Assembly (NCBI GenBank): GCA_002269645.1
Contig: NIVC01001993.1
Coordinates: forward strand, 1 to 64,000
Source: Macrostomum lignano
Lineage: Eukaryota
Direction: 5' to 3'
Length of the DNA stretch: 64,000 bases
A program made the translations under genes and the position numbers. Below, piece after piece: positions 1-43,383 of this stretch. Position 1 is the first letter of the stretch. Each line of letters begins with the position of its first letter. The notes under the pieces were generated by a model. The model ran no database searches. It saw nothing but the letters and a program-made list of their open reading frames with translations, and was not told the DNA's origin.

Positions 1-2669
1 TTTATTGTATATATGTACACTCTGTAGCTGATCATATATTTAAATCAAGGATGATTACTTACCACGGTAATGATGCAGCTAAGCACATGGCAGAATCATT
101 AGTAAATGTATTTGAATATATTCAAAATCAATATGATAAATTATCAAAAAATATTAATATGACAAATAAGGATAGAGACAATTATAAAAATGCAACAAAT
201 TGTTTTATGTGCAAAAGACATTTAAGTAAGAATAATAAGATACGAGAACATTGTCATCTAACAGGAATTATCGAGGGGCAGCATGTAGATCATGTAACGC
301 AAAAGAAGGAAAAGGATGTAAGGAAATACAGTATTTTTTCATAATGGATCCGGATATGATTTTCATTTCTTAGTTCGAGAATTGCTTCATTTAGGAAAGG
401 ATGAATATGAAATAAATATATTACCTAAAACATCAGAAAATTACATATCAATAACATATGGTAAGAAATACTCCCATCTAGTTTTTCTAGATCCTTGAGA
501 TTCTTATCAACATCTTTAGCAAATGTTGTTTCATCATTAGTTCCAAAACCATGGGATTTAGAAATAGTAAAGAAAAACTTTCCAATACTATTGAATCGTT
601 TCAAAAAGAAAAACTATCCGAGGAAGAACTAATGCTATTAACTCGTAAGGGCATCTATCCATATGAATATGTAACATCTGAAGACGTATTTTTTCATACC
701 GAATTACCCCAATTGAAAAGTTTTATTCAACATTATCACAAACAAACATAAGTGAATCGGATTATGAACACGCTCAAAAAGTATGGAAATACTTTAATTG
801 TAAAACATTTAAAGATTATCATAATCTATATCTTAAAGCAGATGTTCTCCTATTAGCTGATGCATTTGAAAACTTTAGGAATCATACATATGAGAATTTT
901 AAAATTGATCCCGCATATTGTTTCAGTGCACCGGGATTAACATGGGCTTGTGGTTTGAAACATACAGATGTTAAGATTGATTTACTAACTGATCATGATA
1001 TGTTGTTAATGATTGAGAGAGGAATTCGCGGTGGATTCTCGGGTGTACTAGGAGATAGATATACTAAAGTAAATAATAAATATCTACCAAATTATAATAA
1101 AAAAGAAAAATCATCATATGTATTATATCTAGATGCAAACAATTTATACGGTGGTTGTATGAAACAAAAATTACCAATAGCTGATTTCCAATGGAAGATG
1201 ACCCCGATTATTACAAAAATATTCCCGAAGGAAGGGGCTGTATCGTAGAAGTGGATTTGCAATATACTCGGGAAGCAAAAGCAAAAACATATAAATATCC
1301 TTTAGCTCCAGAGCATTGTTCAGTTAATGAAGATGATTTATCACAAACACAAAAAGATTATCTTAAAGTAGATAATGCAAAACATCTAGCAACAAAAAAA
1401 TTAATATTAAATTTACATGATAAGAAAAACTATGTAGTGCATTATAAGCTTCTACAATTTTATGAAAAGCAGGGATTAAAAGTGTCTAAAGTACATCGAA
1501 CAATATCGTTTATTGAGGAAGATTGGTTAGCTAAATATATTGACTTTAATTCAAATCAGAGACAGATGTCAAAAACAAATTTTGAGAAAGATTATTGGAA
1601 ATTAATGAATAATGCTTTTTATGGAAAAACGGTTGAAAATATTAGAGATAGAACCCAATTCCATTTAGAAAAGGATATTGATAAAGCAAAGAAATATTTC
1701 TCAAAACCTAACTTTAAAGACTTTATAAAATTTGATGATAACTTTATGGGTATTCATATGAGAAATAAAACAACAAAATTTCTTAAACCAATATTTATTG
1801 GAATGGTTGTTTTAGATTATGCAAAGCTGGTAATGTATGAATACTATTATGATGTTATAAATAAAACATGGCCAGATAACTATCCAATATATGCAGACAC
1901 CGACAGTTTGGTATTTAAGGTTGAAACAGAGGATCGGGCAAAGCCGCGAACCAAAGGTTCGATGTCTATAAAGATATGGAAAAAATTAAGGATACATTGG
2001 ATACCTCCGACTATCCGGATAACCATCCTTTAAAATCAGATCAAAATAAAAGTTGTACTTAAAATGAAAGATGAATTAAATAGCAAAATCATAACCGAGT
2101 TTATAGCAATAAGATCAAAATGCTATGCATTTAAGGTTTTAGGACAGGAGGGAGAGGTAAAAAAAATAAAAGGGGTATCAAGAGCAGCAGTAAAAAAGAT
2201 AACATTTGATGATTATAAAAACGTACTTTTAGATTACCTTAATACAATTGAAAATTATCATGCTCCACAATATCGATTAAATTCAGATAAGCATCAGATG
2301 TTTGTCATCGAGACAGATAAAAAAACATTAAGTCCATTTGATGATAAAAGATATTTAGATGATAAAATTAAAACATATCCATATGGTTTAAAAGAAGAGA
2401 TAAAAAATATGATAAAAGATAAAAAACAAAAAGAAGATATAATAAGTAAATATAATGAATACAAAGCGGCAATAAATAATTATTATTACGATTGTGATTG
2501 TGAATCCGAATGTGATTGTGAATATAATACATTTCTAGAATATGAAAAAGATATAGATAATTATTATTCAACATTTCCAAAAGAACTTAAAAAATTAAAT
2601 AAGGAAAAAGTCTTGAATAACTGGAAGAGATTAACAGAAAAATTACTTATCGGGTCTGTAAAAAACTAA
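1..2669 (+). pseudogene. Protein-primed family B DNA polymerase (pPolB), 5'-truncated by the window edge and frameshifted
   Basis: Motifs YLDANNLYG, KLMNNAFYGKT, YADTDSL, RSKCY and KIKGV, plus an EndoVII-like CxxC..HCHLTG.YRGAAC segment and RKGIYPYEY. About 8 single-base frameshifts are needed to join the ORF pieces. Confidence 0.93.
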
Positions 2670-2707
2670 AGCATGTAATTGTTTAGCATAATATCATTAA
2701 CTTCATT

Positions 2708-3004
2708 TCATATATTATTGAAGGCACAATTTTCCTCACAGTCGGCAGGGTAACTTAAACAATCCTTTATTTTTTTCCTAAGTTTTTTTATTTTTCTAAC
2801 CAATCTATCTATTTCAATTTCAATTACTATTTCAGCATAAACAATATCTTGTCTTAAAAAACGTTTTCTTTTATCTATCTCATATCGGATGGGAAACATA
2901 TCGTCCCCATACTCATGATATTTCTGAGATATAATTATATTTATTTTTTTATTAATATCATTAAGTTCACGCTCTTTAGTGATAAGGATTTTTATCGTAT
3001 CCAT
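2708..3004 (-). CDS. Polinton hypothetical protein (98 aa, coiled-coil-like)
   Basis: ATG-initiated ORF in a gene-dense viral region, overlapping the next ORF; no recognisable domain. Confidence 0.45.
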   Translation of the reverse strand: MDTIKILITKERELNDINKKINIIISQKYHEYGDDMFPIRYEIDKRKRFLRQDIVYAEIVIEIEIDRLVRKIKKLRKKIKDCLSYPADCEENCAFNNI

Positions 3005-3351
3005 TTTCTTATAAAAAATTTAGTCTTATCGTCATCCTCCCAAACAGCCGCCAATTTTACAGTCCTATCACTCTTTTTATTATTTGTTTGTTTTAGTTTA
3101 AATTGCAATCCACCCTCGTTGCAGTATTTCATAACAAACGCTTTAGGTTTATTAATAACTAAAACAGGAAAATTTTTAACATCATCTCCGCTTAGACATA
3201 AAATTTTTTGCCCATCTAATTGTAAAAATATTGATTGAAGCCCAATAAATTTAACCTGTCTCAAACATATAATATTATATTCTTTATTCTCCAACATATT
3301 GGGTGTGAGATAATTAATCACATTAGAATCGGTTTTGAACCAGCTCTCCAT
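2992..3351 (-). CDS. Polinton hypothetical protein (119 aa)
   Basis: ATG preceded by the element-wide TAAAAATG start context; no recognisable domain. Confidence 0.55.
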   Translation of the reverse strand: MESWFKTDSNVINYLTPNMLENKEYNIICLRQVKFIGLQSIFLQLDGQKILCLSGDDVKNFPVLVINKPKAFVMKYCNEGGLQFKLKQTNNKKSDRTVKLAAVWEDDDKTKFFIRKWIR

Positions 3352-3377
3352 TTTTAATCTAAAAAAATAACAAAAAA

Positions 3378-3890
3378 ATGAAAGACATTTATGTTTGTAA
3401 TAAATGTAATGTGACTATGCACAGAGGGCAAACAGCAAACGGAGATATATATCATATGTGTTATTCATGTTCTAAAATATATCAATTTGAAAAAACAAAA
3501 AAGATTGAAAACTCATATTACTATTTTAAAAACACAATTTTAAGAAATCTTACAAGAGACATTTCTGATCCAATTTTAATTCCCGGAAATAATGTTTATT
3601 TATATAATAACTTTTTCCATTTAAATAAAGGAAAGGGATTAAGTTCGAAAGACTCCGAAAGGATTTTAATTTTAGTTGGATATTATTTCAATTTTCTTAT
3701 TCGAGAGAATACAAAGTTTATAAGGATAGGTAACATACCTAACGAAATGTTATTGAAAAAGTCATTGGAATTTTTATGTATTGATAAAAAATTTAAACCT
3801 AGGATCAGAAGAGAGTTACCACTTTGGGAAGAATATATAACATATGCATTAGAAAAACTAAACAACCTGAAGTTCTACAGCACTTCCTGA
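3378..3890 (+). CDS. Polinton hypothetical protein with N-terminal Zn-ribbon (170 aa)
   Basis: CNKC...CYSC Cys pairs; AAAAATG start context. Confidence 0.6.
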   Translation: MKDIYVCNKCNVTMHRGQTANGDIYHMCYSCSKIYQFEKTKKIENSYYYFKNTILRNLTRDISDPILIPGNNVYLYNNFFHLNKGKGLSSKDSERILILVGYYFNFLIRENTKFIRIGNIPNEMLLKKSLEFLCIDKKFKPRIRRELPLWEEYITYALEKLNNLKFYSTS

Positions 3891-4513
3891 CCGCGGGCTT
3901 TGTGCCCCAGTAGCAATAGTTTCAGGTTCGTAAATGCCTAATGTTTCTATCGGTGGAGCTTTGGGTTTATCGAGTCTCAACTCTTTTAATTCCATATCGG
4001 TAAAAGTTTCAACATCTAAAATTCTATTTCTATCTTTTAAATATTTTTCATATAATTCAACCGCGGTTGATAATTCATGAATCGTTATCTCTCCGTCATC
4101 CAATATTTTTTGCACATATAAATATAATTGATTTTTATATTGCTTGCAACATCTCTTAAAGATTTATATTTTTCCTTTCTTTTTTTAAGATATAATTTAA
4201 TTGCTAAAAGTATTGATAAGTTCCTGATCAATTCAAAACCTGATATTGAGCCAATTGAAATACCTAAAAATAATTGAGATAAATTAAGAGTTGGAATAGA
4301 TTGTAAAATACCTAAAACGATTACACATAACATTGATAAGCTTCCAAATCCAATATTGAAAAAGTCCATATTTCTTATATGGTTTGAAACTCTTCTTACT
4401 TTTTTAGCATATAAATCATAATCATAGTTAATACGATCAACATTACTTAACATCTGACCTTTACGTTGGTTGAACCGGTCGCGTTCCCATTTATCTGCTT
4501 CAGATACCGACAT
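3858..4513 (-). CDS. Polinton membrane protein with two hydrophobic helices (one frameshift near 4110)
   Basis: ORF 4085-4513 (two hydrophobic stretches) joins ORF 3858-4115 (..QKILDDGEITIHEL..) through one indel. From memory, this resembles a conserved animal-Polinton membrane protein. Confidence 0.6.
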
Positions 4514-4826
4514 TCTCGTCTATTTTTAATAGCACCAAAATGAATTCCCCACGCTCTTTGGGTATTTGCCCGGAGCTTAATAGGTATTGTATTGGAGTGA
4601 TTCTTTCTTTTTTCTCCCATTTAAATCCTATTTTCCAAAACTCTTGAAGTATAATATGATTTTTTAATAACTTAATTAATTCTTGAAGCTTCTTATTATC
4701 CTGAACATTTACAGTACTAAATAAAAATTTGGTATGAGATTTGAATGTTTTTATATTTGATTCTTGTTTAGGAATAGGAATATAGACATTATTTTGCCGC
4801 ATCGATGGAGTTCTACTAAAAGCCAT
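4500..4826 (-). CDS. Polinton hypothetical protein (108 aa, MAFSRTP...)
   Basis: The likely start is the ATG at 4826 (TATAAAATG context), not the upstream start given by the ORF track. Confidence 0.5.
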   Translation of the reverse strand: MAFSRTPSMRQNNVYIPIPKQESNIKTFKSHTKFLFSTVNVQDNKKLQELIKLLKNHIILQEFWKIGFKWEKKERITPIQYLLSSGQIPKERGEFILVLLKIDENVGI

Positions 4827-4842
4827 TTTATATAGAAATATT

Positions 4843-6856
4843 TTATATTTGAGTAGGAGGTTTTTCCAAATAAGCAGTAGAGGGAAAAACATAACCAAAC
4901 GACGTACTACCACATACAACTGCGCCACGAATAAAATGTGCAGCATCCGATCCTCCAGTTCGAGCACCAAAACCCATAAGGGTTCCAGATTTATCTAAAG
5001 TTCCCCAAGTTCCACTATCATATGTGAAAACGTTCTGCCAATGAGGGTAAAGAATCACCAGCAACATTGTATGACTGTAATCTATACCAAACCCTTTGAT
5101 TTAAAATATTAATTCAAAAGATGCCAATCACCGTTATCAATATTAGCATAGGCTACAGTTTGATCCGTCGCGCGCTTGATCCGTCTGATTTTTTTTACTC
5201 CAAAACCAAATATCATGCCACTCACTAGCAAAAACTATCAATCCGGCGTCGGTTGATAATCCAGATCCAAATTCCGATGTTGGACGTTGGTGACAGTATG
5301 CATAAAACCAAACCGCATCTGCACCATCTCCTGTAGCATTAGCAACTCGGAAAAAGAAAGACGCAGATATATTTTGAAAATGTGTGAAATTGAATTGTAA
5401 AGCACCACTTACTCCAGAAGTTTCACGAGTAATTCTAGCGCCGTTTTGATAATCGATATAAGAAGCGTCACCAATTAAAGAACCGACTGGATATATATCT
5501 CCGGCGGTTGTTGGATTTTGATATCCAGACCAATTGCAAATTACTGGTTCGAACAAGGCCGCATCAATAGCAGGTATTCCATCCAATTTATTTTTATCGC
5601 TTCCAGACATTCTACCATTTGATGTTGGAGTAGCTAGCTGATCTACGTACGCTCGCGGAACTGCAGAAAGTATTTGAGTTGGCCAATTAAGATCTTGAAT
5701 TTCAACACGGTGTTCAAATAATTGTATTTGACGAACCTCGATAGGTTGTGTACCGGTACCACCAGTTGGGAAGAATACGCTATAATATTTCCAAAAATTA
5801 GTCGTTAAATTAGATAGAGCAAATGATGTTGCTTGAACTGGTGATCCCGACGTAGTTAATGTCGTCCATGAATCGGTAGCAACATTTTTTGCGCGAACCG
5901 ACCACCCCGAGGGTATCTCAATTGTTTCACTGCCTGTAATTCTTAATTCAAATATTCTTCTATTATAACCTAAAAATTCAAATTGAATTTCCATATTGGT
6001 TGTGGTTCCGGTATTTGGTGACCATTGTGTCGCAAGGCTTCCATCTCCAACTCGAAAAGCTGTGTTGCCATTTTCAGATGCTGTAAGAACAACATCAGGA
6101 TTTGAAGTATTTGATGTAAGCGGCGTGGTAAAAATATCGGCGTCGGTTGCATTAGCTCGCTCGTTTACTTGGCCTAGAGTTATCGAGTCTGCGTTATCTG
6201 TTCCAAATAATAAATTTGTTAATTTAAAATTATTCATATTAATATTACCACTACGAGTGGCAACTTGATTATCGACATAGTTCTTATCAACCACTGAATC
6301 ACTAGTTGTAATTGAAACATTTATAATTCGGTTGTTGCTCATATCTAGGTTTCCGGTTGCGGTGGTTTGAACATAACGTGAATCAGAATCAGTTCGAGAA
6401 TAAGAATCAGTTACATCTCTTTTTAAATTTAATCCATTATCAACTTCGGTTTTGGTATAAGAATCGGCTACGTTCCGTTTCAAATTTAATGAATTATCAA
6501 CTTCGGTTTTGGTATAAGAATCGGCTATTCGTTTAAATTTAATGAATTATCAACTTCGGTTTTGGTATAAGAATCGGCTGTATTGCGTTTTAAATTTAAT
6601 GAATTATCAACTTCGGTTTTGGTATAGGAATCGGCTACGTTCCGTTTCAGATTTAGTGAATCATCTATTTGAGTTTTGGTATAGGAATCTGCAACATTTC
6701 TTTTTAAATTTAATTTATTATCAATTTCAGTTTTTTTATAACCTTCATCTCATTAATATATCGATTATCTCCAAATGTAACACTTATTCCACCAGATGTG
6801 CCACCACCACCACTACTTGTTGTTCCGTTCCATGAGGGTGTTCCAGAAAATAACAT
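4843..6856 (-). CDS. Virion fibre / receptor-binding protein: 19-aa YTKTEVD repeats, fibre-stalk motifs, discoidin (F5/8C-like) domain and C-terminal L-type lectin domain; about 4 frameshifts
   Basis: ATG at 6856; about six 57-bp repeats (YTKTEVDNSLNLKRNVADS); LDMSNNRIINV, DKNYVD and NGRMSGSDKNKLDGI fibre motifs; discoidin-like segment ~5710-6135; lectin motifs GDGADAVWF, IDNGDWH and MGFGARTGG (last in ORF 4843-5067). Confidence 0.75.
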
Positions 6857-6880
6857 TTTTTACTGTCTATTTTATAGAGT

Positions 6881-7330
6881 CTAAAATCGCCATCGCTCGC
6901 ATGCTTTGCATGATATCTTAAATACTTCGGGGTTTACACGAGCTTCATTCGAAAGTCGATATAAAAAATACAACGCCGCTTGCCCGCAATAACTTTTATC
7001 AAAGGTTTGAAATTGTTCGTGATGATCTCCACATAAACGATTTTTAGTATGATTAAATTTATCTTTTATTTCCTGTAACGGAGGAAGCGCGTATGAATCA
7101 AAAAAATAAACAAGTTTAGGTTTGAATAAACTGCGACCAATGAACACCATTTTCTTTTGTTGTTTCAATATTAACAATGAAAGATCCATATTGTGGTAAG
7201 TCTTTGATCTCATCTCGCATAACACATCTGAATGGTTTTATTTTTAACTGCCTCGCCCAATTTGTTAATTCGATATTGCTTGTTGTGTCGTTCCATATCT
7301 TTGTTTAAAATCATCCCACGTCATGGTCAT
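6881..7330 (-). CDS. Adenain-like cysteine maturation protease (2 frameshifts)
   Basis: Reconstructed TSNIEL..FRCVMRDE..IVNIETTKENGVHW..YFFDSY..QFQ..YCGQ, containing the His, Asp, Gln and Cys catalytic motifs. Confidence 0.88.
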
Positions 7331-7331
7331 T

Positions 7332-7541
7332 TTATGTTCCTGAAAAACTCTTGGTTTTAGTTAGTTTCGTAGGTGTGGGTTTTAACAATTCCTTTCTTAT
7401 TTTATCAGCTTGTAACTGCCTTAATTTTGCTAGTTCTAGTTCGTAATTATCTTCAGCTTTTTTAACTTTTTCTGATTGTTTTTTTATTAAATTATTATTA
7501 TTATCGTGCTTTGCACGCGAACATGTTGTTCGATTACCCAT
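7332..7541 (-). CDS. Small basic protein (69 aa), candidate N-myristoylated virion protein
   Basis: TAAAAATG start; MGNRTT fits MGxxxS/T; lies between protease and penton. Confidence 0.5.
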   Translation of the reverse strand: MGNRTTCSRAKHDNNNNLIKKQSEKVKKAEDNYELELAKLRQLQADKIRKELLKPTPTKLTKTKSFSGT

Positions 7542-7554
7542 TTTTACTATAGGA

Positions 7555-8337
7555 TTAAACCTGTTTTATACGTAAAATTATTGTTATTGACTGCCCACCA
7601 AAACTTATTAATCTATCGCTTTCATCTACAATCCTAATATAAATTGATTGAACATTATATTGATTTAATGGGTAATATATTGGGGTTTGAGGTGATACAA
7701 TCATTTTCTCTCCAATTGGAACAGCAAGAAATGGGATTGAATAAATAATTCCACGTTGAACCAAAACTCCATTATTATCTGTTATATAACCGCCGTTTGA
7801 TATGTCGGTTGTTATATTAATTGTATTGACTCCGCCCTCAATTTCCACTGTATCACCGGTGCTTGATGTGGTAACTATTCGGGAATTAAATCCAAGTATG
7901 GTTCTGAGTGAATTTGCAATTGTGAAATCAACCTGATATCCGGATCCTAGTGATAGTGTGAATCTGCCAGACGGTAAATCAACACCTATAACAATTGCTC
8001 CTGCTACCCAATCACCATTAGTTGTTAATTCTCCTTCTATATAAGCATTCAAATCAGTATAGCTATACGCTCCTGGGTTAACGCTAAATGTTGTCCAATT
8101 GGCTCCGGAATCTTTAGAATATCTAAATTGATTATTTGTTGCATTAATTAATTGAGGCATGTTGAAAACCGAAAATAGAATTAAACCTATTTGATAACTT
8201 AGGCTTTGATCAAGTTGTAATGGATCGCGCAATTGAATCCGTTGCTCGCTGGTTGTCATTATAAACTGTAATGTTGTACTAAATTTTGAATTAGTTCGAT
8301 CTACCAATTGTTTTATAGTATTTAAATTTGTAGTCAT
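7555..8337 (-). CDS. Minor capsid protein (penton, single jelly-roll)
   Basis: NNQFRY, PGAYSY, LRTILGF, PIYYPL and IRIVDESDRLISF motifs typical of Polinton mCP; start at MTTNLN (8337) in AAAAATG context. Confidence 0.88.
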   Translation of the reverse strand: MTTNLNTIKQLVDRTNSKFSTTLQFIMTTSEQRIQLRDPLQLDQSLSYQIGLILFSVFNMPQLINATNNQFRYSKDSGANWTTFSVNPGAYSYTDLNAYIEGELTTNGDWVAGAIVIGVDLPSGRFTLSLGSGYQVDFTIANSLRTILGFNSRIVTTSSTGDTVEIEGGVNTINITTDISNGGYITDNNGVLVQRGIIYSIPFLAVPIGEKMIVSPQTPIYYPLNQYNVQSIYIRIVDESDRLISFGGQSITIILRIKQV

Positions 8338-8386
8338 TTTTATAGTGGGAAATCGAACTTTGGTTCGCGGACTCCGTCCGATCGTG

Positions 8387-9181
8387 CTATGTCTCTTCTT
8401 CCTCATTATCTTCTTTTATCAAATTTGTTAAAATTCTATGTTTCCTTTCTAACCTCGGATTGATATAAATATGTTTGTATTGGCTATCATCCCAAATTTT
8501 TTTACACATACTTTTAAATGGTTTTGCATCCAACCCAGGATTAAATCTCGCGTGAATATTTTGTAGATCATAGTTATCTAAATCAAACATTACACAACAG
8601 CTAGCATTCTTTTTTATAATCGATTCTAATTCTCTAAAGGATTGAGTAAGATAAAAAGCTCCAATTCCATCTCCTCTACCACTAACAAAAATTTCCTTTT
8701 GTAATTCTTGATCACCGTCATTAATACAATCATCAAAAATAATTAGTGTTTTATCATGTTTTGGAATTTGATCATAGGCTAATCGGGTTGATACTCTAAC
8801 AGTTGGGGCTCGATCGGACGAAGTCCGCGACCCTTCGGGGCGATCGGTGATGTTTTCTGGCTGTTGTGCCATTGTTTTACATAAATCCTCAATGTCTGCT
8901 AGATTAAATCGCGGTTCGTCATCATCCTCATATTGCTCATATGCTCTTAACATTCTAAACAAGACATCTTTTTTTAATTTGTTTTTTAATCCATGTTTAA
9001 GAAATTCATAATATTTTATTCTAGGTTTATTAGTATAAATTATTAAATTATTATAGTCTAACATTCCATCTGTTGTTAATAAATCGTAAACAAAGTGTGT
9101 TTTTCCTTTACCTGATCCTCCGATTACTAAACAAAGAAAAGGATCATTTGGAAATATCTTATCGTGTTTTGCCTTTACCAT
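8387..9181 (-). CDS. A32/FtsK-like genome packaging ATPase
   Basis: Walker A GGSGKGKT, Walker B LIIFDD, GR..GI..FYLTQSF; intact 264-aa ORF with a 10-aa in-frame insertion. Confidence 0.95.
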   Translation of the reverse strand: MVKAKHDKIFPNDPFLCLVIGGSGKGKTHFVYDLLTTDGMLDYNNLIIYTNKPRIKYYEFLKHGLKNKLKKDVLFRMLRAYEQYEDDDEPRFNLADIEDLCKTMAQQPENITDRPEGSRTSSDRAPTVRVSTRLAYDQIPKHDKTLIIFDDCINDGDQELQKEIFVSGRGDGIGAFYLTQSFRELESIIKKNASCCVMFDLDNYDLQNIHARFNPGLDAKPFKSMCKKIWDDSQYKHIYINPRLERKHRILTNLIKEDNEEEET

Positions 9182-9266
9182 TTTTAAAGAAATAATTTAA
9201 ATAGGTGCGACGGTCGGAGACCTGTGCCGCTTACAGCGGCGCGACGTGCTTTGCACTGCACTCATT

Positions 9267-10737
9267 TTACAATGGTGCGTCCCGAACAATCGTGCCATCA
9301 GCTTTAGCAATTGACATATATTCCTCTAGAAACAATACGTGGGCGTCAAGTGCCTGATTACCGGTTTTATTAATCTCTAACATATAATTAAGTCCAATAT
9401 TGGCTACGTTTTCTTTCTGTGCCGTTAGATCATAAACAACCACTGGATGAATGTTTAGAAACTCTGTGGGTGTGTACTGAGGGACGGCATACGCTTCATT
9501 TTTAGCATAATCTTGATAATATTTTATAAAATCATTAACATTATTATTTGCTATATTTAAATTTAGGGGGTCTTTAACCGGATAATATTGATCATCAACC
9601 TGCAGGCGGATATTCTGAACATTAAACTCGTTAATTGCAGCAACTGCGTTGTCTGTTGCGGTGGCTGCTTGTTCTGCTATGGCACCGGATTGAAGCCAAT
9701 ATAAATCCCCATTTGCTCTTTTACTCCTTCTATTTGTTATCTTAAACCAAACAAAAATATATCTCACCCGACGTTTTGATGTCAGTATTTGCCACTGGAA
9801 TGAATCCTGATTGTTATTAATGGTTCGCATAAAGTGTCTACGATTCAAATAAAATATTTCCTGATCATGCGTTAACTGATTATCGATGTGTTTTAAAAGC
9901 GGGCTGTTACCTCAATAGTTGGTACGACTAATTGAATTGAATCTATACGAACTGCTATATCGGTTGAAATTGAGGTTCCATAAAGTATCCTAGGCTGATA
10001 TCCACCAGATATTTGCAACTGTATCCCAAATTTTAATCCTTTCCATACCCGATTTGGTGAGAAAAACCCAAATAGTGGAAAGATTGAAAAGTCCTGCTCA
10101 TATGCTGTTGCTGTGGTTAAAACCGCGACTGGGAATTTATTCTGACGATCTATAAAACCAGTATTAATATCTTTTGTATTAGTCATAGTGGTTACAACTG
10201 GAACTATGTTTGTATTAAGGTAAACAATTAGCGCTGCAGTATCTGCACCGGCTGCGTTTTGTACATTAGGGAAAACTACTGCTTGCCCGTTACCTTTATC
10301 CGGCATCCACCCAACATTATCACCAACTTGTTTTGATAAATAAGTATAATTTAAATGTTTCAAAACTCCATTAATCTCTGCGGGGTTTGATGATGTCTCA
10401 ACCTCAGCACCATTAACAGTTAGTTGAGCTTGGGAAAAACATTTATAAAACCAATCATTTTCAATTATTATTCCGGATCGATCTGCGATATCTCCGCCTG
10501 CAAGAGCAGTTCCATCATTTCTAGTATACAACCATCTAACGCGGAAAAACGCATTTTTCATATCCAATATAGTGTTGGTTGCGCCGATGTCAAAAGTTAC
10601 CGTTCCAGTAGTAAAGTTATTTGAATTATCACTTGTTGGTAGGGTATAATTTAAATCTTTGCTCTGACCTCATTAATATACTGTCGGTGCTTTTTGAAAT
10701 GAAATTTATCACTCCACATAGTTTTTGTTTCAGCCAT
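9267..10737 (-). CDS. Major capsid protein (double jelly-roll, hexon-like); 2 frameshifts (~10665, ~9897)
   Basis: ATG at 10737; pieces TFDIGATNTILDMKNAFFRV, FSQAQLTVNGAEVE and NVQNIRLQVDDQYYP..VVYDLTAQ join to about 490 aa; position next to ATPase and penton. Confidence 0.85.
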
Positions 10738-10771
10738 TTTTTTAAGTTAAAAAAGTTTTTTATGTTAAAAA

Positions 10772-11443
10772 ATGAGTCAATTTATGGACGTTGATGGAGA
10801 GTTAGCGATTTATAAAGAGAAGCAAAGATATTCTGATTTTGTTAGAAATTTACAAAAAAGAAAGTTAGGAATACAATTAGCTGGCGAAAGATTTGCTGCT
10901 CCTTTTGTTAATCCTATTACTGGGAAAATTAGTGAACTAGAAAAAACAGATAAAGATCTTCTGGAAAAAATTGCTAAAAATACTGAGCCAAAAGAGGATG
11001 AACTTTTAGATGAGCCGCCTGCTTATGATGTTGATCAAGCTCAATTGAGAGTTGCAGAGATTAGGGCTGCAGAACGGGGTGGAGTTGATGAATATCCGAG
11101 AGCTGCACCAACTAGTATTGCTGTGACAGATTTAGGTAATAATAATTATCGAATTGGTGGAGTTGATAAAAATCGAAATGAACTATATAGAGAATTGGGC
11201 GGAGCATATAATATTGTTATGAACCCTAGGGTAAAATTTAACCCTGAATTATATACTAGGGATGAATTAGTAAGTGCAAAAATTTTTTATGATGAGTTGG
11301 GAGTAAGAGCTGCTAAAAATACCAGCTTGTATAAAAAGATTGTTAATTCTATAAATAACAAACCAGCTGTTGGAGAAGGATTTAAAACTCCTAGAAAACT
11401 TGTTTTAGCTGCCGCGAAAGCTGCTGGACATACTGGTGTTTAA
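10772..11443 (+). CDS. Putative Polinton core protein with C-terminal VGEGF (possible protease site) and AAGHT motif
   Basis: Intact 223-aa ORF with AAAAAATG start, divergent from MCP across only 34 bp. The family assignment is from memory. Confidence 0.6.
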   Translation: MSQFMDVDGELAIYKEKQRYSDFVRNLQKRKLGIQLAGERFAAPFVNPITGKISELEKTDKDLLEKIAKNTEPKEDELLDEPPAYDVDQAQLRVAEIRAAERGGVDEYPRAAPTSIAVTDLGNNNYRIGGVDKNRNELYRELGGAYNIVMNPRVKFNPELYTRDELVSAKIFYDELGVRAAKNTSLYKKIVNSINNKPAVGEGFKTPRKLVLAAAKAAGHTGV

Positions 11444-11470
11444 TTAATTGTTAAATTTATTTTTTATAAA

Positions 11471-12040
11471 ATGGAAACTAATAAGATTTGTACTAAGTGT
11501 AAACAAGAAAAACCGATGACGAAAGAATTTTATTTTTGGAGAAATGATTCAAAAAAATTTAGAAATGATTGTCGATCTTGTCATAATACCTCATCTGCTA
11601 TTTGGATAAAAAACAATAAAGATAAATGGAATGAATATAGAAAAAATAAGTATCACACTGATGATAATTACAAACATATTGTTTTAATTAGAAATAGAAT
11701 AAATTGGGCGTTGAAAAATTTTAATGACAAGGACTATATCTCATATCTTGGTTGCACAAAAGAATTCTTTTTTGATTGGTTAAATTTCACAAGAAATTAT
11801 TATGTATCAAAAGATTATACTGGAAAGTTAGATATTGATCATTTCATCCCCGCTTCTTCATTTAGTTACAAAGACGATGATCAGATTAAAAAGTCTGAAA
11901 ATTGGAGAAATAAAAGATACTTAACTAGCGTAGATAATCGCTATAAAAAAGTTAAACAACCAACTATCGAAGAGTTTGCAAAACAATTGGTGCTATCATG
12001 TATTTTTATGGCTATTAAAAATGAACCAAATAGTGTTTGA
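11471..12040 (+). CDS. HNH-family endonuclease with N-terminal CxxC..CxxC zinc finger (NCLDV/phage homing-endonuclease type)
   Basis: KICTKCKQEK..CRSC; YLGCT.EFF..W; DIDHFIPASSF..NWRN..N..K. Confidence 0.8.
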   Translation: METNKICTKCKQEKPMTKEFYFWRNDSKKFRNDCRSCHNTSSAIWIKNNKDKWNEYRKNKYHTDDNYKHIVLIRNRINWALKNFNDKDYISYLGCTKEFFFDWLNFTRNYYVSKDYTGKLDIDHFIPASSFSYKDDDQIKKSENWRNKRYLTSVDNRYKKVKQPTIEEFAKQLVLSCIFMAIKNEPNSV

Positions 12041-13598
12041 AGGAGGATTGTTAGATGTTCAAAAAGGATTAACAAGCTTACCACCAATCTTTACTACTGG
12101 AAGGTATACTGGGGAACTACATTTACCATCAATGAACTTCACAGGTTAACCCGTGGCCTGAGTGAGGAAGGCAATGTCCTTGCTAGTCACTATTTGTGGC
12201 GACATCTCCAAATTGCGTGAAACCCGTCATACTGCTTCAAGTACCACTTCAATTGAGAAATCTTTTGAAGGAACAGAGGTAACTCCTCTTCCCAAAGGTA
12301 AAAAGCTTGAAGACACGGTGGCAATGCGCAGCCAAGCTCCTAAGTATTTTAAATATAAGGAGAAGGTTCAGAGAGCAGACGGAGATGGGCGGTAATTATC
12401 GCCGCTTAAGGTGTGCTCCAGCCTCTTTCGAAAGATTGAGGGTAAACTACCCGGCACTCGCTTAGATTTGAGATTAAATCCTGATGACACCCCAAAAGCC
12501 GATTCAATTCCCATTAACGGTATTGATTGGTTAGCATACTATCATGACTTAGCATACAGAGATGCTGATAAGAACACACCCGAGGAAGCATTAAGATTAA
12601 AACATGAAGCCGATCAAAAAATGATTCAAGGATTAGATAACTTGCAGGGATTATCGGTAGGTCAAAAATTAACTAGGTGGATGGTTAAAAAGATCTTGCA
12701 GTCTAAAGTTAAATTTGGTTTGGGAATTAATTATAATCAACATGGAAATAATTGTGTCGAATGTTTGTTATTAAGTGGTAGTGGGCTAAGTTATGATAAG
12801 GCTAAGGTTCTTCATAAAGAATACCGAAAACCTAAATTTTATAGAAAAATCATGAACTTCAAAAAGAATGAAATTTGGTATGCTGATTTAATGTCGATGC
12901 CGAACGAAAGAGGATATAAATATATCTTAACCATATTAGATGGTTTTACTCGATACGCGTGGGCTGTTCCTTTAAAATCCAAAAAGGGAGAGGAGGTTGC
13001 TGCTGCTTTTAGAAGTCTTGGAGAAAAAAGCGAAAGATTGTGTGTTGACGAAGGAAAAGAATTTTACAATCCTCATATGTATAAATTATATCATTTTGAA
13101 AAAGGACAAGAAAGGAAAAAGGACGCGAATGGGGAGTATATTAATAAAATTTATTCTATTTATGGAGAGAGTAAAAACGCATTAATAGAAAGATTTAATA
13201 GAACTTTAGGTAAGAAATTATGGTTTCAGTTTAGTCTTAATGGTAACCAAAAATGGGTAAAAATATTACCAGACGTAGTGAAAGATTATAACAATTCATA
13301 TCATTCAGCTATAAAGATGACTCCTCAACAAGCTTATAACAATCCTGAAAATGTTAGGGTTACTTTTGGAAAATTTGAAAAAAAGAAAACTAAAGATTTT
13401 AAAGTTGGTGATTCTGTTTATATCTATAAATGGAAAGATAAGTTTGAAAAAGGAAGAAAAGGATATTGGAAGATAAGTGAGAAATTTACTATCAGTAAAG
13501 TTTTAAATACCAATCCTACAACCTATATAATTGCTGATAAGGACGGTGAAGAAATATTGGGTTCTTTTTATGAGAATCAGATATTATCTGCAAACTAA
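12021..13598 (+). CDS. PLA2-domain / RVE integrase fusion; exon 1 12021-12146, exon 2 12450-13598 (424 aa spliced)
   Basis: Exon 1 (TTAAAAATG start) ends ELHLPSMNFTG and exon 2 begins PGTRLD..IDWLAYYHDLAY (parvovirus-type PLA2 GPG loop and HDxxY). The integrase part has WYADL, VDEGKEF and IERFNRTL (DDE) plus an SH3-like tail. Confidence 0.88.
12147..12449 (+). ncRNA. Group I self-splicing intron (IC1-like), 303 nt
   Basis: P AAAUUGCGUGAAA (12210-22), Q CAAUGCGCAGCCAA (12322-35), R GUUCAGAGAGCA (12366-77), S AAGGUGUGCUCC (12408-19). P1 with U.G splice pair, P3, P4, P5abc, P6, P7, P8 and P9 all pair, several with compensatory changes. Removal restores an in-frame PLA2 motif. Confidence 0.9.
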
Positions 13599-13608
13599 GT
13601 TCGATCAG

Positions 13609-13833
13609 TTACTTAAGACAACATGGTAGTAAATTTTTTATAACAAACAAAAACAATATTATTACAATAATTGTTACTAATATTATTATTGACATTTGTT
13701 CAACTGTTATCAAACTTAAATTTTCATTAAGTTCATTAATTGGAACATTTCCGATGTAGGAATAGTTTACCTTCATTTTTTTATATATATTTTTCACAAT
13801 AAATGTCGTTTCTGTTATAGAATAATAGTTCAT
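13609..13833 (-). CDS. Small membrane protein (74 aa)
   Basis: TAAAAAATG start; one strong hydrophobic helix near the C-terminus. Confidence 0.45.
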   Translation of the reverse strand: MNYYSITETTFIVKNIYKKMKVNYSYIGNVPINELNENLSLITVEQMSIIILVTIIVIILFLFVIKNLLPCCLK

Positions 13834-13849
13834 TTTTTAAATATTTTTT

Positions 13850-14164
13850 TCACATAAAAATTTCACTTTCATTCTCTGAATCACTGGTTTCATATGAACT
13901 ATTTGTTGATTCGGAATCTGTTGATCTAACCTCCCAATCATCCGAATTTAAATAATCTCCAAGTTGAAATATTAACTCACCCTCTTGTTCTAAATCATAC
14001 ATCTCATCTAGCTCTAATGGATAAAGTTTTAGGTCGTGCTTGTCGTCATATTTTAAATAAACTTCATCAATTATTCCATTCAAAATATGTTGTTTTATTA
14101 TCTCTGCATTTTTAGCAACAGTCTCAAAAGTATCACTAACAGAAAAGGTGTAAACTCGGGTCAT
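13850..14164 (-). CDS. Polinton hypothetical acidic protein (104 aa)
   Basis: TAAAAATG start; Ser/Glu-rich tail. Confidence 0.5.
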   Translation of the reverse strand: MTRVYTFSVSDTFETVAKNAEIIKQHILNGIIDEVYLKYDDKHDLKLYPLELDEMYDLEQEGELIFQLGDYLNSDDWEVRSTDSESTNSSYETSDSENESEIFM

Positions 14165-14218
14165 TTTTAGTAACAGAAAAAGACCCTTCGCGCCTGCGGC
14201 GCGGGCAAGGGGTTATAG

Positions 14219-14489: not shown

Positions 14490-14493
14490 ATAT

Positions 14494-15195
14494 CCCCCCT
14501 TTGGGATTATAAGAATTGGCATCTCAGCATCCCCCCCTTTGGGATCATAAGAATTGGCATCTCAGCATCCCCCCCTTTGGGATCATAAGAATTGGCATCT
14601 CAGCATCCCCCCTTTGGGATTATAAGAATTGGCATCTCAGCATTTCCCCTTTGGGATTACAAGAATTGGCATCTCAGCATCCCCCTTTGGGATTATAAGA
14701 ATTGGCATCTCAGCATCCCCCTTTGGGATTACAAGAATTGGCATCTCAGCATCCCCCTTTGGGATTATAAGAATTGGCATCTCAGCATCCCCCCTTTGGG
14801 ATCATAAGATTTGGCATCTCAGCATTTCCCCTTTGGGATTATAAGAATTGGCATCTCAGCACCCCCCCCCTTTGGGATTATAAGATTTGGCATCTCAGCA
14901 TCCCCCCTTTGGGATTATAAGAATTGGCATCTCAGCATCCCCCTTTGGGATTATAAGATTTGGCATCTCAGCATCCCCCCTTTGGGATTACAAGAATTGG
15001 CATCTCAGAATCCCCCTTTGGGATTATAAGAATTGGCATCTCAGCACCCCCCCCCTTTGGGATTATAAGAATTGGCATCTCAGCATCCCCCCTTTGGGAT
15101 CATAAGAATTGGCATCTCAGCATCCCCCTTTGGGATCATAGGAATTGACATCTCAGCATTCCCCCTTTGGGATTATAAGAATTGGCATCTCAGCA
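14494..15195. repeat. Minisatellite, ~36-bp unit CCCCCTTTGGGATTATAAGAATTGGCATCTCAGCAT
   Basis: Tandem copies directly flank the Polinton end. Confidence 0.95.
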
Positions 15196-15381
15196 TTCTC
15201 CCTTCGAGACTTGGCGACTTCGAGAAGGGTTTTGCGTGTGTTCAGTTCCCAATATAAAGCTAAGCATAAGATAACAACTTAATGTGTCTGAATTTGCCTT
15301 ATTATCTGTATTAGTGGGTCCTAATGGTCCCACGGAAATTCAAAGTGGATTTCTAACTGATTTTTTAATCGCATTCTTCAA

Positions 15382-24200: not shown

Positions 24201-27200
24201 CATCTCATCGGATTCGAGGATGCCCGAGTTGAGCTGGCGGTATTCAGGCGGGAGCACCTGTTCGAGACGGCTAATATGCTGCTGCGCGAAGCCCTGCTGC
24301 ACTATTCGCACGAGCTGCGGTCTCACGCCGTCATGATCCTGGGATCTGTGGACTTTCTCGGCAATCCCATCGGCCTGTTCACAGACCTGTCCGAGGGCAT
24401 CACGGGACTGATTCGCGATGGAAATGTCAAGGGCTTGGTTAAGGGCGTGTTTCACGGCATTTCCAATTCTACAGCTAAGGTGACTGAATCAGTACTGATT
24501 TTAATGCAATCCTAAAGTCTTTGGTTAACAGAGTTTCGGGTTCTCTGAGTTTCGGGTTCTCTGAGTTCCGGGTTCTCTGAGTTTCGGGTTCTCTGAGTTT
24601 CGGGTTCTCTGAGTTTCGGGTTCTCTGAGTTCCGGGTTCTCTGAGTTCCGGGTTCTCTGAGTTCCGGGTTCTCTGAGTTCCGGGTTCTCTGAGTTTCGGG
24701 TTCTCTGAGTTCCGGTTTTTCTAAGTTTCGGGTTCTCTGAGTTTCGGGTTCTCTTAGTTTCGGGTTCTCTGAGTTTCGGGTTCTCAGAGTTTCGGGTTCT
24801 CTGAGTTCCGGGTTCTCTGAGTTTCGGGTTCTCTGAGTTTCGGGTTCTCTGAGTTTCGGGTCTCAGAGTTCCGGGTCTCAGAGTTCCGGGTTCTCTGAGT
24901 TTCGGGTTCTCTGAGTTTCGGGTTCTCTGAGTTTCGGGTCTCAGAGTTCCGGGTTCTCTGAGTTTCGGGTTCTCTGAGTTTCGGGTTCTCTGAGTTTCGG
25001 GTCTCAGAGTTCCGGGTTCTCTGAGTTTCGGGTCTCAGAGTTCCGGGTTCTCTGAGTTTCGGGTCTCAGAGTTTCGGGTCTCAGAGTTTCGGGTTCTCAG
25101 AGTTTCGGGTTCTTAGAGTTTCGGGTTCTCAGAGTTTCGGGTTCTTAGAGTTTCGGGTTCTTAGAGTTTCGGGTTCTTAGAGTTTCGGGTTCTCTGAATT
25201 TCGGGTTCTTAGAGTTTCGGGTTCTCAGAGTTTCGGGTTCTTAGAGTTTCGGGTTCTTAGAGTTTCGGGTTCTCTGAATTTCGGGTCTCAGAGTTTCGGG
25301 TCTCAGAGTTTCGGGTTCTCAGAGTTTCGGGTTCTTAGAGTTTCGGGTTCTCTGAATTTCGGGTCTCAGAGTTTCGGGTTCTTAGAGTTTCGGGTTCTAA
25401 GAGTTGTCAGAGCTGTCAGAGTTGTCAGAGCTGTCAGAGCTGTCAGAGTTGGGAGCCAAATCAATACCAAACCGATCCCACTCGCTCAGGTGACGGGCAG
25501 CATCTCTGACGGCCTCACCATACTCAATATGGACGAGAGGCACCTGGCCAAGAGGGGCAAACTGCGAGAAGACGCTTCAAAATCCGGCACCCTTCGGGGC
25601 CACTGGTCAGCCGGGGTCAAGGGGTTTGGCCACGGCATCATTGGCGGCATCACCTCCATAATAACTCAGCCTTACTATGGCGCCTCCGAGCGCGGCCTCG
25701 AGGTAAGGGGGAGGGGGAAGGGGGACCGGCGGCGGCGCGGGTGGAACCAACCAATTAGAATCTGCTCGCAAATCTGTGTGTGTATTATATTGTACACTAA
25801 TTTTTGATGTTTAAAGAATCACGTGATTCTAAAACCCACCCACAGCCACTTGTGCTGTTTGCTAATCTACTATTATAGAATCATGGATGGTAGAGATATA
25901 ATATAGAGAGAGTGGCACTGCCACTGCACATGCTGCATCCCTTCCTTTGCTTCCTTTTTTTAGTCTCCCCTTCCTTTTTCTATCCTGCGCACGCACGCAC
26001 AAACACATAAGAGCTCTGACCTTAGAGGGCTTGTGTCCTTAGAATTGATTTTCTCTATCCTCTCCCTCTCTCCATTCATGGGGTTCCAGCCCAGACCCAG
26101 AGACGGAATAGCAGATTGTTGCCCTATAAATACTTAGGCAACTGCACTCCCAGCAGCTGCCTCGTTAGCGCAGTAGGTAGCGCGTCAGTCTCATAATCTG
26201 AAGGTCGTGAGTTCGATCCTCACACGGGGCACAATTTTTTTGTGAGTGGATTTTTTTACACTTTTGGTTACTCGATTTCAACAATTATTATTTAAGAACT
26301 TTATTAAAATATTTTAATATATTAAATTTTTGGAACAAAAAAATCAAAAACAAAATCGAATGAAAATTATGGTTTTTAAAAATAGCCGATATGTAGTGTT
26401 GAATGCATAAACCAACCTACTTTCGCCACTGAATTATAAATATTAGCAAAAATATTAGCAAAATGATGTCTTTTATATTTATGTAAGCCATACTTGGATC
26501 TGTCAATGCAAGCAGGTAAATTTATTTGTCAATCAAAGCATAGCCATTTAGCTTGATAAAGCATTTGGTAGCATAGCAACGAGCATTTAATTAGTCACGG
26601 GATTTTTTACACGAAACTTAAATATTCACTTTAAAAGTTGTATAAATTTTCGTGGAATGATTTAACATGTTTAACCAAGCACTTAGCAGCACTTAGTTGT
26701 GTTACACTAAAATGTTATTAGATAGTATTGCAAAAACGCCAGGGTATTGGTATCATATATTTACATCGGAATGGAATTCGCATGCGTTTCTCAGCATAAA
26801 AATTATTTTTAAGAGTCCGAACAAACAATTACGTTAATTAATACAAGCATAAAAAGGAATGCAAGTAGGTTGATTTGCTGTTCTTAAATATTAACTTCGG
26901 CACTTTTTTAACTTGGAATATCAAAAGTCAAAACTTAAACGCAATATGCGCTACTAACAGTAGGCTATCGGTAGTAGTGTGTGTTAATAATAAAACGTAG
27001 AAAAACGAAATTGACAATGAAAAGCACTGTAGGGTTAAAGCTACGTAGTCTGACGCGTACGCATTAGCCGGCAAAGCACGATTGACAGCCCGGCTATTAG
27101 CACCACTATAGTTGCTAATATGCCGCCAAGCGCGAACATGCTGGTCTTGTACTGGGCCAGGTAAGCAGGCGTAGGCATAATTGTAGTCATCCTGGCTGGC

Positions 27201-30200
27201 CGCACAACTAGATCGGGGAAGAAGTTATTCCAAAACGCGTAGTGATAGGTGCGATAGTCCTGATACAGATTGAAATCGTTCTCGAAGTTGTCCTGTATAT
27301 TGAGCTGGAAATAAGTTCGATTATTCCAACGAAACGAGTCCCAGGTGAAATTTCTAACTAATTGTGGCGTAGCGTTGCCGTGAATGACGAAATTGCTGAT
27401 AAAGTACATCATGTAGTCGGTCATGTTCATGTCTAGATCGGCGTAACCAAAATTCGGTCGCTGAATGCCCAGGTTAGTCCAGTTGGAGGCATTCAGGTAG
27501 GGCAGCCCGAAGATGTACTGCAGGTCGCTGCCGTGATAGGCGCCCATGTAGCGAGTTTTTGGATCGTTTCGGCTCCGGTACTTGAACACGTACATCTGGG
27601 TGAAGTTCTTCAGCGGCCGCTTGTCGGCGTGGAAGCGCAGGCTGCGGATCAGGCCGCTGCCGTAGTACCTGCAGATTTGTTAAAAATGTTAATCAGAAAC
27701 ATTAGAAATCATTGTTATCAATCAGCAATAATGCATCGGCCTTCAAAAATGTGAAAGCCATTCAATCAGCCTACAAAAAGTGAGTGATTCAATGGGCCTT
27801 CAATAAATTGAGCGATTCAATCGGCCTTCAAAAAATAAAAGCAGTTCAATCGGCCTTCAAAAATGTGAGAGTGATTCAATCGGCCTTCAAAAATGTGAGA
27901 GTGATTCAATGGGCCTTCAAAAAATGAGAGTGATTCAATGGGCCTTCAAAAAATGAGAGTGATTCAATGGGCCTTCAAAAAATGAGAGTGATTCAATGGG
28001 CCTTCAAAAAATGAGAGTGATTCAATGGGCCTTCAAAAAATGAGAGTGATTCAATCGGCCTTCAAAAAATGAGAGTGATTCAATCGGCCTTCAAAAAATG
28101 AGAGTGATTCGATCGGCCTTAAATAAAATTGAGAGCGATTCAATCGGCCTTCAAAAAGAATGAGAACGATTCTCACCTATCCGAGTAGAGATCTCGCAGC
28201 ATCTGCAGCCGAGCAGTGTCATTGTCTGTGGCTGCCCAGTCCGTGTACTCAAACTCGATAGCTTTAGCAATGGCGTGCTCGTCGTGGGGAAACACGGCCA
28301 GAGAGATGTTCATGATTCGCTCTTTGAATAGCGCAGCTGACAGGCTGGCGTTCTCCACCACGCCTGGCAGGTCGGTAGTGAACTGGGCGCCGTCGTCCCA
28401 GGTGATGCCGCCGATGACGCGAGTCTGAGCAAATCGGCCCTGACTGCGGAGATTCTCCGGCGTGTCCAGAATGAATTTGCCTGAGCAATGGGGATGAGTA
28501 ATATTCGATGAGTTCAGAGAGAAGAGAGTTCGGGCCTTGTAGTGCGATTCACACCATCCGTGAGGGCCAATCGCTAATGCACAGAGAGTGAGCATGCCTG
28601 GCACAAGGACTACTCAAGTACAATAGAAAGACTGGAAACCTTTCATAGAGCTTTCCGTTTAGAAAATTAGGATTCTATGTTAATTTTTTATTCTACGTAC
28701 ATTCCCTGTACCTAAAAATCATAAAAATGCATGGCACGGCTCGATTCATTGGTTTTATGAATCTATTTTATCACCTGAATCCTAGTTTTTCAACGAAAAG
28801 CTTTATGAATATTAATAGAGCTATAAGAAAGTCACAGCATATCAAAAGATAAACACTGGATCTGCCTCCTATCGAAAGCAATAACAATTTGTAGTGTATT
28901 TTTCGGAAAATCCTGCCTCCTAACATTTTCTAAGAAACGAGGTTTCTCGTCCTTTTACTTAAGTAGTCCTTGGCCTGCCATTGAGAAAGTCAGGGCCGCT
29001 GTGCACCCCTAAGCTACTGAGTAAGTAGTATATGTATAATAACCTACTGAAACGAGAACGAGAATGTTTATGCAGAATCTGCGAGTATGCGAATATGCGA
29101 AGCCGAGGAGATTTGCCATAGACATTCGCGGAGATTATGAGTATTCTCCGCTCCCTGTATTCGCGCGGGACACGTTTTGTCTATGGTAGAAGAAAGTGTT
29201 CAATCAACCTCACTCTGGCTCGCGGCGTTAATTTTATTGTCTATGGCAGCGGAGGTTACTTAGTGAGAATCTCCGCTAGCAAAGCACTAGCGACATAGAC
29301 AAAGCGTACAGGCAAAGTGGGATACATTATAGTTCTTCAACAGCCTCACCGTCCACAGTCGGACTCCACGGCTTGCCTAGCCAAGACCGCTCGTGCACCT
29401 GGCTATCGCTAGCCGCCCCGGCCAGCTCCGCGTGGGTTCGCTGCCTCAGACAGCTGAGCATCTCGCCCGGCTCCTGATTGGTGCACGCAGTTTTAACCGC
29501 CAATTCCAGCGCGTACCGCTGCGACTCCCCCGGATAGATAGTGAAGCCGCCCCACATGAGATCGCTGCCGGACAGCCAGATGGCCCGGTGGAACAGCGGC
29601 TCGGCGTACATGCCGCTCAGCGGCGACATGCTGTGCAGCGCGACGTCCCCGGCGCCGGAGCCGTGGCCCATCAGGGTGACCCGGGTTCGATCGCCGCGGA
29701 ATTTTTCAGCCTCCTGTTGTAGATAGCGGAGCGCTTGCACCTGTGGGTGGGGACCGGATTGTATGTTCTCTTAGAGTCTGAAACTTCTCTACCTTTTTAT
29801 TATTGATAAACAGTTTTGTAAGAATCTATTTAAACGATAGTTAAGGTATCTAGGCTTAGGAAATGGCATCTAGGCTTAGGAAATGGCATCTAGGCTTAGG
29901 AAATGGCATCTAGACTTAGAAAATGGCATCTAGGCTTAGGAAATGGCATCTAGGCTTAGAAAATGGCATCTAGGCTTAGGAAATGGCATCTAGGCTTAGA
30001 AAATGGCATCTAGGCTTAGAAAATGGCATCTAGGCTTAGGAAATGGCATCTAGACTTAGAAAATGACATCTAGGCTTAGGAAATGGCATCTAGGCTTAGA
30101 AAATGGCATCTAGGCTTAGGAAATGGCATATAGGCTTAGGAAATGGCATCTAGACTTAGAAAATAACATCTAGGCTTAGGAACTGCCAATGACAATTTAG

Positions 30201-43310: not shown

Positions 43311-43330
43311 GCCTCCGTGGCGCAATAGGC

Positions 43331-43367
<37 letters not shown>

Positions 43368-43383
43368 GAGCCCACCCGGGGCG
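43311..43383 (+). tRNA. tRNA-Asn (GTT); 3' acceptor strand one G short
   Basis: GCCTCCGTGGCGCAATAGGCTAGCGCG-TTCGG-CTGTTAA-CCGAA..GGTTCGAGCCC; downstream T-run. Confidence 0.85.

Follow-up and report, generated by a model that had tools for sequence, protein, structure and literature searches.

Positions 12147-12449 of the forward strand in the stretch of DNA analyzed here (64,000 nucleotides of contig NIVC01001993.1 from the Macrostomum lignano assembly GCA_002269645.1, hereafter referred to as the window) can be assigned with good confidence to a genuine group I intron of Tetrahymena-like (IC1-like) architecture, which interrupts the PLA2-integrase gene of an integrated polinton-like virus whose host genome is animal-like. 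The evidence comes from a full-length match to the Rfam covariance model of group I introns, from the presence of all helices of the ribozyme core, and from the protein relatives of the interrupted gene, many of which lack the insert. The gene and its parts are as follows.

12021-13598, + strand: PLA2-like/rve integrase gene interrupted by the intron, recognized from its relatives, Pfam matches, and integrase structures
12021-12146, + strand: exon 1, 42 codons ending in NFTG, with the last base being the U of the P1 wobble pair
12147-12449, + strand: 303-nt group I intron of IC1-like architecture, lacking an internal open reading frame (ORF) of note
12450-13598, + strand: exon 2, encoding the remainder of the PLA2-like domain (approximately 12507-12671), the rve core (approximately 12861-13067), and the C-terminal region

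Covariance-model match, ribozyme core, and splice junction

In a cmscan search of 801 bases, all 253 positions of the Rfam model RF00028 (Intron_gpI) were aligned (model positions 1 to 253) with window positions 12137-12440 of the + strand, with an E-value of 3e-15 and a score of 62.1 bits, against a gathering score (the curated Rfam cut-off) of 50 bits for this family. The same match was recovered in a 16-kb search at an E-value of 6e-14, and the RNA of the insert agrees with the model in both sequence and structure. These results bear out the initial annotation of this DNA, which had proposed a group I intron from the letters alone and had named the Rfam model as a suitable check. When the whole 64-kb window was scanned with the fast Rfam filters in the gathering mode, only two tRNAs were reported and the 62-bit match was overlooked; the intron becomes visible only with laxer filters, as in the scans of 0.8 to 16 kb that recover it. 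Default genome-scale scans therefore probably under-count group I introns in eukaryotic assemblies. No second group I intron was found in the window by the RF00028 scans. The G+C content of the 303-nt insert is 45.9%, compared to 31.8% in the remainder of the virus-like element that carries it. An unconstrained minimum-energy fold of the insert already contains P3, P4, P5abc, P6, P8, and P9; the folding-energy z-score is only -1.8, so that the covariance model, and not the folding energy, is the meaningful statistic here. A blastn comparison of the intron with phage records returned only a 48-base match to the core, in Brochothrix phages. Counted base by base, the following helices can be formed.

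12140-12162, + strand: P1, formed by the end of the 5' exon and the internal guide sequence, 6 of 7 pairs, including the U12146-G12156 wobble
12203-12209, + strand: 5' strand of P3, with its partner at 12381-12387, 7 of 7 pairs
12214-12330, + strand: P4-P5-P5abc scaffold domain with an A-rich bulge
12331-12367, + strand: P6/P6a/P6b, with the tetraloop-receptor-like motif CCUAAG/UAAGG in P6a/b
12373-12418, + strand: P7 (12373-77/12414-18), 5 of 5 pairs, enclosing the 3' strand of P3 and P8
12388-12403, + strand: P8, 6 of 6 pairs
12420-21/12447-48, + strand: P9.0, 2 of 2 pairs
12422-12441, + strand: P9 hairpin with a GAAA loop, 6 of 8 pairs

The helices named in the initial annotation are all found where it had placed them, and P2 (8 of 8 pairs), P2.1 (5 of 5), P5, P9.0, and P10 are additionally present. 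In the scaffold domain, P4 (12214-19/12325-30) and P5 (12224-28/12317-21) are fully paired (6 of 6 and 5 of 5, respectively), as are P5a (7 of 7), P5b (6 of 6, with the GAAA loop on top), and P5c (5 of 5); P6, P6a, and P6b have 3 of 3, 4 of 4, and 4 of 4 pairs. The P3/P7 pseudoknot with the conserved core from P3 to P9 is present, and the guanosine-binding pair G12373-C12418 lies in P7, which the cmscan alignment superimposes on the consensus P7; the roles of the terminal guanosine and of P7 are established knowledge, summarized in PMC3679873. By inspection, the insert may be placed tentatively in the IC1 subgroup. It shares with the Tetrahymena-type introns of rDNA the P2-P2.1 helices, the A-rich bulge of P5abc, an L5b GAAA tetraloop facing a receptor-like motif in P6a/b (here a one-base variant of the receptor), a P9 GAAA loop, P9.0, P10, and a P7 whose changes are compensated and whose guanosine-binding pair is G-C. 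Unlike the Tetrahymena-type introns, it has no P9.1/P9.2 extensions, the assignment to the subgroup being one made by inspection, and it interrupts a viral protein-coding gene, whereas those introns reside in the rRNA genes of eukaryotic microbes (PMC3679873).

The boundaries of the intron are settled because the protein family reads straight across the junction. The ORF starts at the ATG at 12021 (context TTAAAAATG), the first codon of the insert (12147-12149) is an in-frame stop, and the PGTRLD sequence encoded from 12450 onward resumes the frame of exon 1, which then stays open to the stop at 13598. In exon-by-exon BLASTP comparisons with the intron-less relative P0271, residues 11-42 of exon 1 correspond to its residues 1-32, and residues 1-381 of exon 2 to its residues 33-387 at 70% identity, with neither a gap nor an overlap at the junction. 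Approximately 80 of the 120 best relatives (alignment A1 and the table of the 120 best matches) read HLPGHNFTG directly followed by PGT, without any interruption, which is precisely the reading obtained by excising these 303 bases. Both the boundaries 12147-12449 given in the initial annotation and its expectation that intron-less alleles reading NFTGPGT might exist have thus held up. The RNA points in the same direction: with exon 2 beginning at 12450, 4 of the 6 pairs of P10 can form, and P9.0 and P10 together favor the same 3' splice site as the proteins. Among five other candidate exon 2 starts, for which P10 has 0 to 4 of 6 pairs, the one at 12455 likewise reaches 4 of 6, but it has no support from the protein relatives. 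If the intron instead ended at 12440, the last position of the Rfam alignment, the exons would still be in frame, but this end would fall within the P9 stem, leave P10 with 2 of 6 pairs, and add three residues that are absent from all of the approximately 80 uninterrupted relatives.

The length of the insert is a multiple of three, and its frame 0 contains three stops only (the opening TAA and two more), as might be expected if it were ordinary coding sequence, an intergenic spacer, or a spliceosomal intron. Such an origin is hardly credible, given the existence of intron-less alleles that lack exactly this insert and the E-value of the covariance-model match. No GT-AG pair yields the junction seen in the family, and the insert starts with TA and ends with TA. 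The coding, spacer, and spliceosomal readings can be regarded as already refuted.

P9.0 and P10 bring 12449/12450 to the guanosine pocket of P7. If the group I intron is active, an external guanosine would attack after U12146, and the freed 5' exon would then attack the 3' splice site. The joining of the exons would restore the Ca-loop region of the PLA2-like domain. The unspliced RNA would run into a stop after 42 codons, so that production of the full PLA2-integrase would depend on splicing. The in-frame stop makes it reasonable to infer that splicing gates the expression of the whole protein.

Several observations weigh against this interpretation of the insert. A single base substitution makes the present copy deviate from the family rule at one invariant ribozyme position, which is required for the second step; P9 contains two U-U mismatches, P10 is limited to 4 of 6 pairs, and the window provides a single DNA copy of the intron. 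The claim that the core is complete therefore stands as far as the core helices are concerned, all of which are present, but not with respect to this invariant position. The deviation makes it doubtful that this copy completes splicing: exon ligation may not take place, with the reaction either stopping after the first step or not proceeding at all. Accordingly, there is a real possibility, which we place somewhat short of an even chance, that the insert, although descended from a group I intron, is an inert relic, the integrated copy no longer completing splicing. In addition to the deviating position, this would fit a germ-line-type insertion located beside host repeats and the capsid-like region of the element, which reads as two ORFs. 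It is less easily reconciled with the intact state of all 20 helices and both GAAA loops, with two open exons that align end to end with their relatives, and with the rest of the element, where most ORFs are open and have kept their A-rich start context; with all these features preserved, the insertion looks young. If the intron is a relic, this insertion does not produce its PLA2-integrase, and what can be learned from the intron concerns the free virus and not the host genome.

The interrupted protein family and intron mobility

A protein search with exon 2 retrieved 1184 relatives, most of which have the PLA2-like domain PF08398 fused to the rve integrase domain PF00665, the closest ones being encoded on short metagenome-type contigs. 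PLA2-like genes are known in Polintons, adintoviruses, and entomopoxvirus-associated polinton-like viruses (PMC3671162, PMC8502044, PMC11296320). As in these elements, a PF08398 domain of the parvovirus VP1 type is found here in a polinton-type element, in this case of an animal-like host; in the window protein and over 1000 relatives, however, it is fused to the N terminus of the rve integrase and does not form a separate virion-protein gene. The PF08398 match is above the Pfam cut-off and extends across the junction in the intron-less P0271, P0273, and P0276, whereas in exon 2 of the window and in the intron-bearing P0002 it is truncated and falls under the cut-off. The intron therefore splits the PLA2-like domain, approximately ten residues from its beginning, and lies upstream of the rve core, both as originally proposed. 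The PF00665 match in the window scores 31.9 bits, just under the cut-off of 32.6, compared to 38 to 39 bits in P0002, P0273, and P0276 and 31.3 bits in P0271, the closest relative; the integrase core also matches integrase structures in the PDB (foamy-virus integrase) at an E-value of 1e-6. Apart from the intron, the gene contains no stop or frameshift relative to its homologs.

The usual marks of a homing intron are its presence or absence among near-identical alleles and a better conservation of the intron than of the host gene. At their N termini, four relatives (P0002, P0026, P0274, and P0275) carry the peptide that the final 13 codons of the window intron would encode in frame 0. Of the 13 residues of this intron-end peptide, 12 are identical, as opposed to 58 to 59% identity in the exon that follows. 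The shared peptide indicates that another lineage has the same intron at the same site. An uninterrupted allele of 423 residues, P0273, belongs to the same 90%-identity cluster as the intron-bearing P0002. The insert is thus present in some alleles and missing from others that are over 90% identical to them, which shows that the intron is mobile. P0021 and P0054, which are approximately 47% identical to the window protein, have their N terminus precisely where exon 2 begins and may represent a third and a fourth intron-bearing lineage, which is only a hint; the uninterrupted P0276 shares a 90% cluster with P0021, a less certain presence/absence pair than that of P0002 and P0273. A region-limited search for further relatives with an ORF start inside the intron yielded 6 candidates, none of them useful. 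No endonuclease is encoded within the intron itself.

The upstream HNH-type gene and known mobile introns

A candidate for an endonuclease acting in its place is encoded immediately upstream.

11471-12040, + strand: free-standing gene for an HNH-type (His-Me finger) endonuclease whose N terminus carries a zinc ribbon, recognized from a PHROG match, conserved residues, and the fold predicted by AlphaFold2 (AF2)

This gene has a 20-nt overlap with the start of the interrupted gene and ends 106 bases upstream of the insertion site. Its product matches the endonuclease VII and HNH endonuclease families of PHROGs (E-values of 1e-7 to 1e-4), whereas Pfam and NCBIfam scans of this ORF gave no match. 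An exhaustive protein search retrieved 2282 relatives, with more than 2000 in metagenomes. Across 42 of the relatives, residues C7, C10, C34, C37, D123, H124, P127, N147, N156, and K159 are conserved, and the D-H...N...N motif (D123, H124, N147, and N156) and the four cysteines are invariant or nearly so. The AF2 model built with alignment A2 has a predicted local distance difference test (pLDDT) score of 94, compared to 43 for the single-sequence model. The sole match of the A2 profile to PDB sequences is a weak one, to the zinc-ribbon part of Hpy99I. On this evidence, we take the ORF for an HNH-type endonuclease.

The combination of an endonuclease-less intron with an adjacent free-standing endonuclease suggests collaborative homing, in which the HNH-type enzyme would cut intron-less alleles and thereby move the intron and its own gene together. 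Collaborative homing in phages is described, with reference to Zeng, Bonocora and Shub 2009, in PMC11296320; phage and cyanophage systems of this kind resemble the present one in having an endonuclease-less intron in a viral protein gene, a free-standing endonuclease gene next to the interrupted gene, and a presence/absence polymorphism among close alleles. They differ from it in that here the host is a eukaryotic virus-like element and the cleavage of the intron-less allele is proposed from the gene position.

The HNH-type endonuclease may thus drive the homing of the intron, a proposal drawn from the relative position of the two, and some results weigh against it. The best fold matches in the PDB are HNH nuclease domains, but weak ones (E-values of 0.06 to 1), and a word-indexed protein search with the HNH ORF found no close relative. 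HNH and GIY-YIG genes also frequently occur as free-standing genes in polinton-like viruses without introns (PMC12220804), and they are widespread in these viruses and in virophages (PMC12220804, PMC11296320). The chances are nearly even, in our estimation, that the HNH gene is unconnected with the intron and is an independent selfish or accessory viral nuclease, with the intron spreading by other means or no longer spreading at all. Two points speak against such independence: the end of the HNH gene, 106 bases upstream of the insertion site, extends into the start of the very gene that is interrupted, and the intron lacks an endonuclease gene and yet is polymorphic for presence and absence.

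According to PMC3679873, nuclear group I introns are confined to the rRNA genes of eukaryotic microbes. The initial annotation knew of none in Polintons, which does not hold in the light of a 2025 report (PMC12220804), in which RF00028 introns were described from polinton-like viruses integrated in protist genomes, namely those of Paulinella (53 introns), Desmodesmus (2 introns), and Rhodomonas (44 introns). The introns of the viruses from Paulinella micropora, Desmodesmus armatus, and Rhodomonas lacustris belong to the same RNA family as the window intron, were detected with the same Rfam model, and, like it, interrupt a protein-coding gene of a nuclear-resident polinton-like virus and have no internal endonuclease gene. 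Their sizes are also similar (309 to 376 nt, compared to 303 nt here), the two sets being compared by description and not by sequence. They differ in the gene that is interrupted, which in the protist viruses is a short (approximately 50 amino acids) unannotated gene upstream of the capsid gene and in the window is the PLA2-integrase gene with the HNH gene directly upstream, and in the host, with protists in the published cases and an animal-like flank here. Our literature search found no report of a group I intron in an animal Polinton, Maverick, or adintovirus. What is new in the window is therefore the host gene, the adjacent endonuclease, and probably the host kingdom, whereas this kind of intron was already known from the protist viruses. 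The protist cases already break the rRNA-only rule; the window intron would carry the exception over to an animal-like host and to a gene on which integration depends. As an endonuclease-less intron with a free-standing endonuclease gene alongside it in a eukaryotic virus, it offers a natural study system.

A broader and distinctly more tentative proposal, one that we consider rather doubtful at present, is that splicing-competent group I introns circulate among animal polinton-like viruses by means of the neighboring HNH endonuclease and reach animal nuclear genomes through integration. If that were true, no earlier self-splicing intron would be known from a protein-coding gene residing in an animal nucleus. 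It would also suggest that viral genes are expressed where the spliceosome does not act.

The host element and its flanking genome

The intron-bearing gene lies near the right edge of an AT-rich element, in which the following parts were recognized.

1-14200, strand not assigned: AT-rich virus-like element of approximately 32% G+C, delineated by composition, gene content, and A-rich start context; its right edge is approximate, and its left end lies beyond the window
8387-9181, - strand: A32-type genome-packaging ATPase (PF04665, 28.9 bits against a cut-off of 22.8; PHROG terminase large subunit)
9267-10567, - strand: capsid-like double jelly-roll (DJR) region in two adjacent ORFs (DJR-like PF21738, E-value of 4e-4, under the cut-off)

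The element is densely coding, and most of its other ORFs have no match in Pfam, NCBIfam, or PHROGs. Neither a protein-primed family B DNA polymerase nor an adenain-type protease or terminal inverted repeats were found in the 14 kb of the element that fall within the window. With these features missing from the window and the left end outside it, "polinton-like virus" is a safer designation than "Polinton," the name used in the initial annotation, which agrees with the A32-type ATPase, the integrase, and the weak DJR capsid match but not with the lack of a protein-primed polymerase in this part of the element.

For most genes of the element, the start context is (T)AAAAATG, seen in at least nine of them, or TAAAATG; such A-rich start contexts are located at 2060, 3349, 8335, 9179, 10768, 11467, 12016, 13831, and 14162, among others. 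This A-rich leader looks like a late promoter and is reminiscent of those of cytoplasmic large DNA viruses. Taken together, the late promoter-like start context and an intron that does not depend on the spliceosome would indicate expression outside the normal nuclear route.

The element also contains a tandem array of a 57-bp unit (approximately 6 copies, 6400-6741), and a partial copy of it lies in inverted orientation at 4047-4081, at a distance of 2.4 kb. At its right edge, a 28-nt inverted repeat with 93% complementarity (14221-14248/14463-14490) is followed by a 37-bp satellite in 19 copies (14492-15204); the inverted repeat may mark the end of the element or an insertion site.

The flank contains a THAP-domain ORF followed by an ORF for a P-element/THAP9-type transposase of 702 residues with five of five Pfam domains (54178-57113, + strand), and this pair looks like a recent DNA transposon. 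The THAP domain is essentially animal-specific. A five-exon gene for a type B carboxylesterase (27044-31641, - strand) and exons encoding WSC domains are found in the flank as well. With a THAP/P-element transposase and multi-exon genes, the flank looks like eukaryotic nuclear DNA of an animal-like host, and the part of the initial annotation that placed the intron in an animal nuclear genome is supported to that extent by the transposase, the carboxylesterase gene, and the WSC exons.

The contig could nevertheless derive from a protist that is either the host itself or a contaminant in the assembly of an animal, in which case the window would only add to the published protist cases. Every published RF00028 match in such viruses is from protists (PMC12220804), and the closest protein relatives of the PLA2-integrase sit on short metagenome-type contigs. 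We consider a protist source improbable, as the THAP domain with a complete P-element/THAP9-type transposase, the five-exon carboxylesterase gene, and the WSC exons fit an animal and the more distant members of the protein family are encoded on contigs of 1 to 13 Mb. An animal-like host thus remains the preferred reading of the flank, although we do not consider the contig to be human.

Two tRNA genes are encoded in the flank, tRNA-Met (CAT) at 26159-26231 and tRNA-Asn (GTT) at 43311-43383, both on the + strand. Between positions 14492 and 63000, there are more than 25 different minisatellite arrays with periods of 15 to 65 bp and up to 65 copies, several of which are located inside the introns of the carboxylesterase gene.

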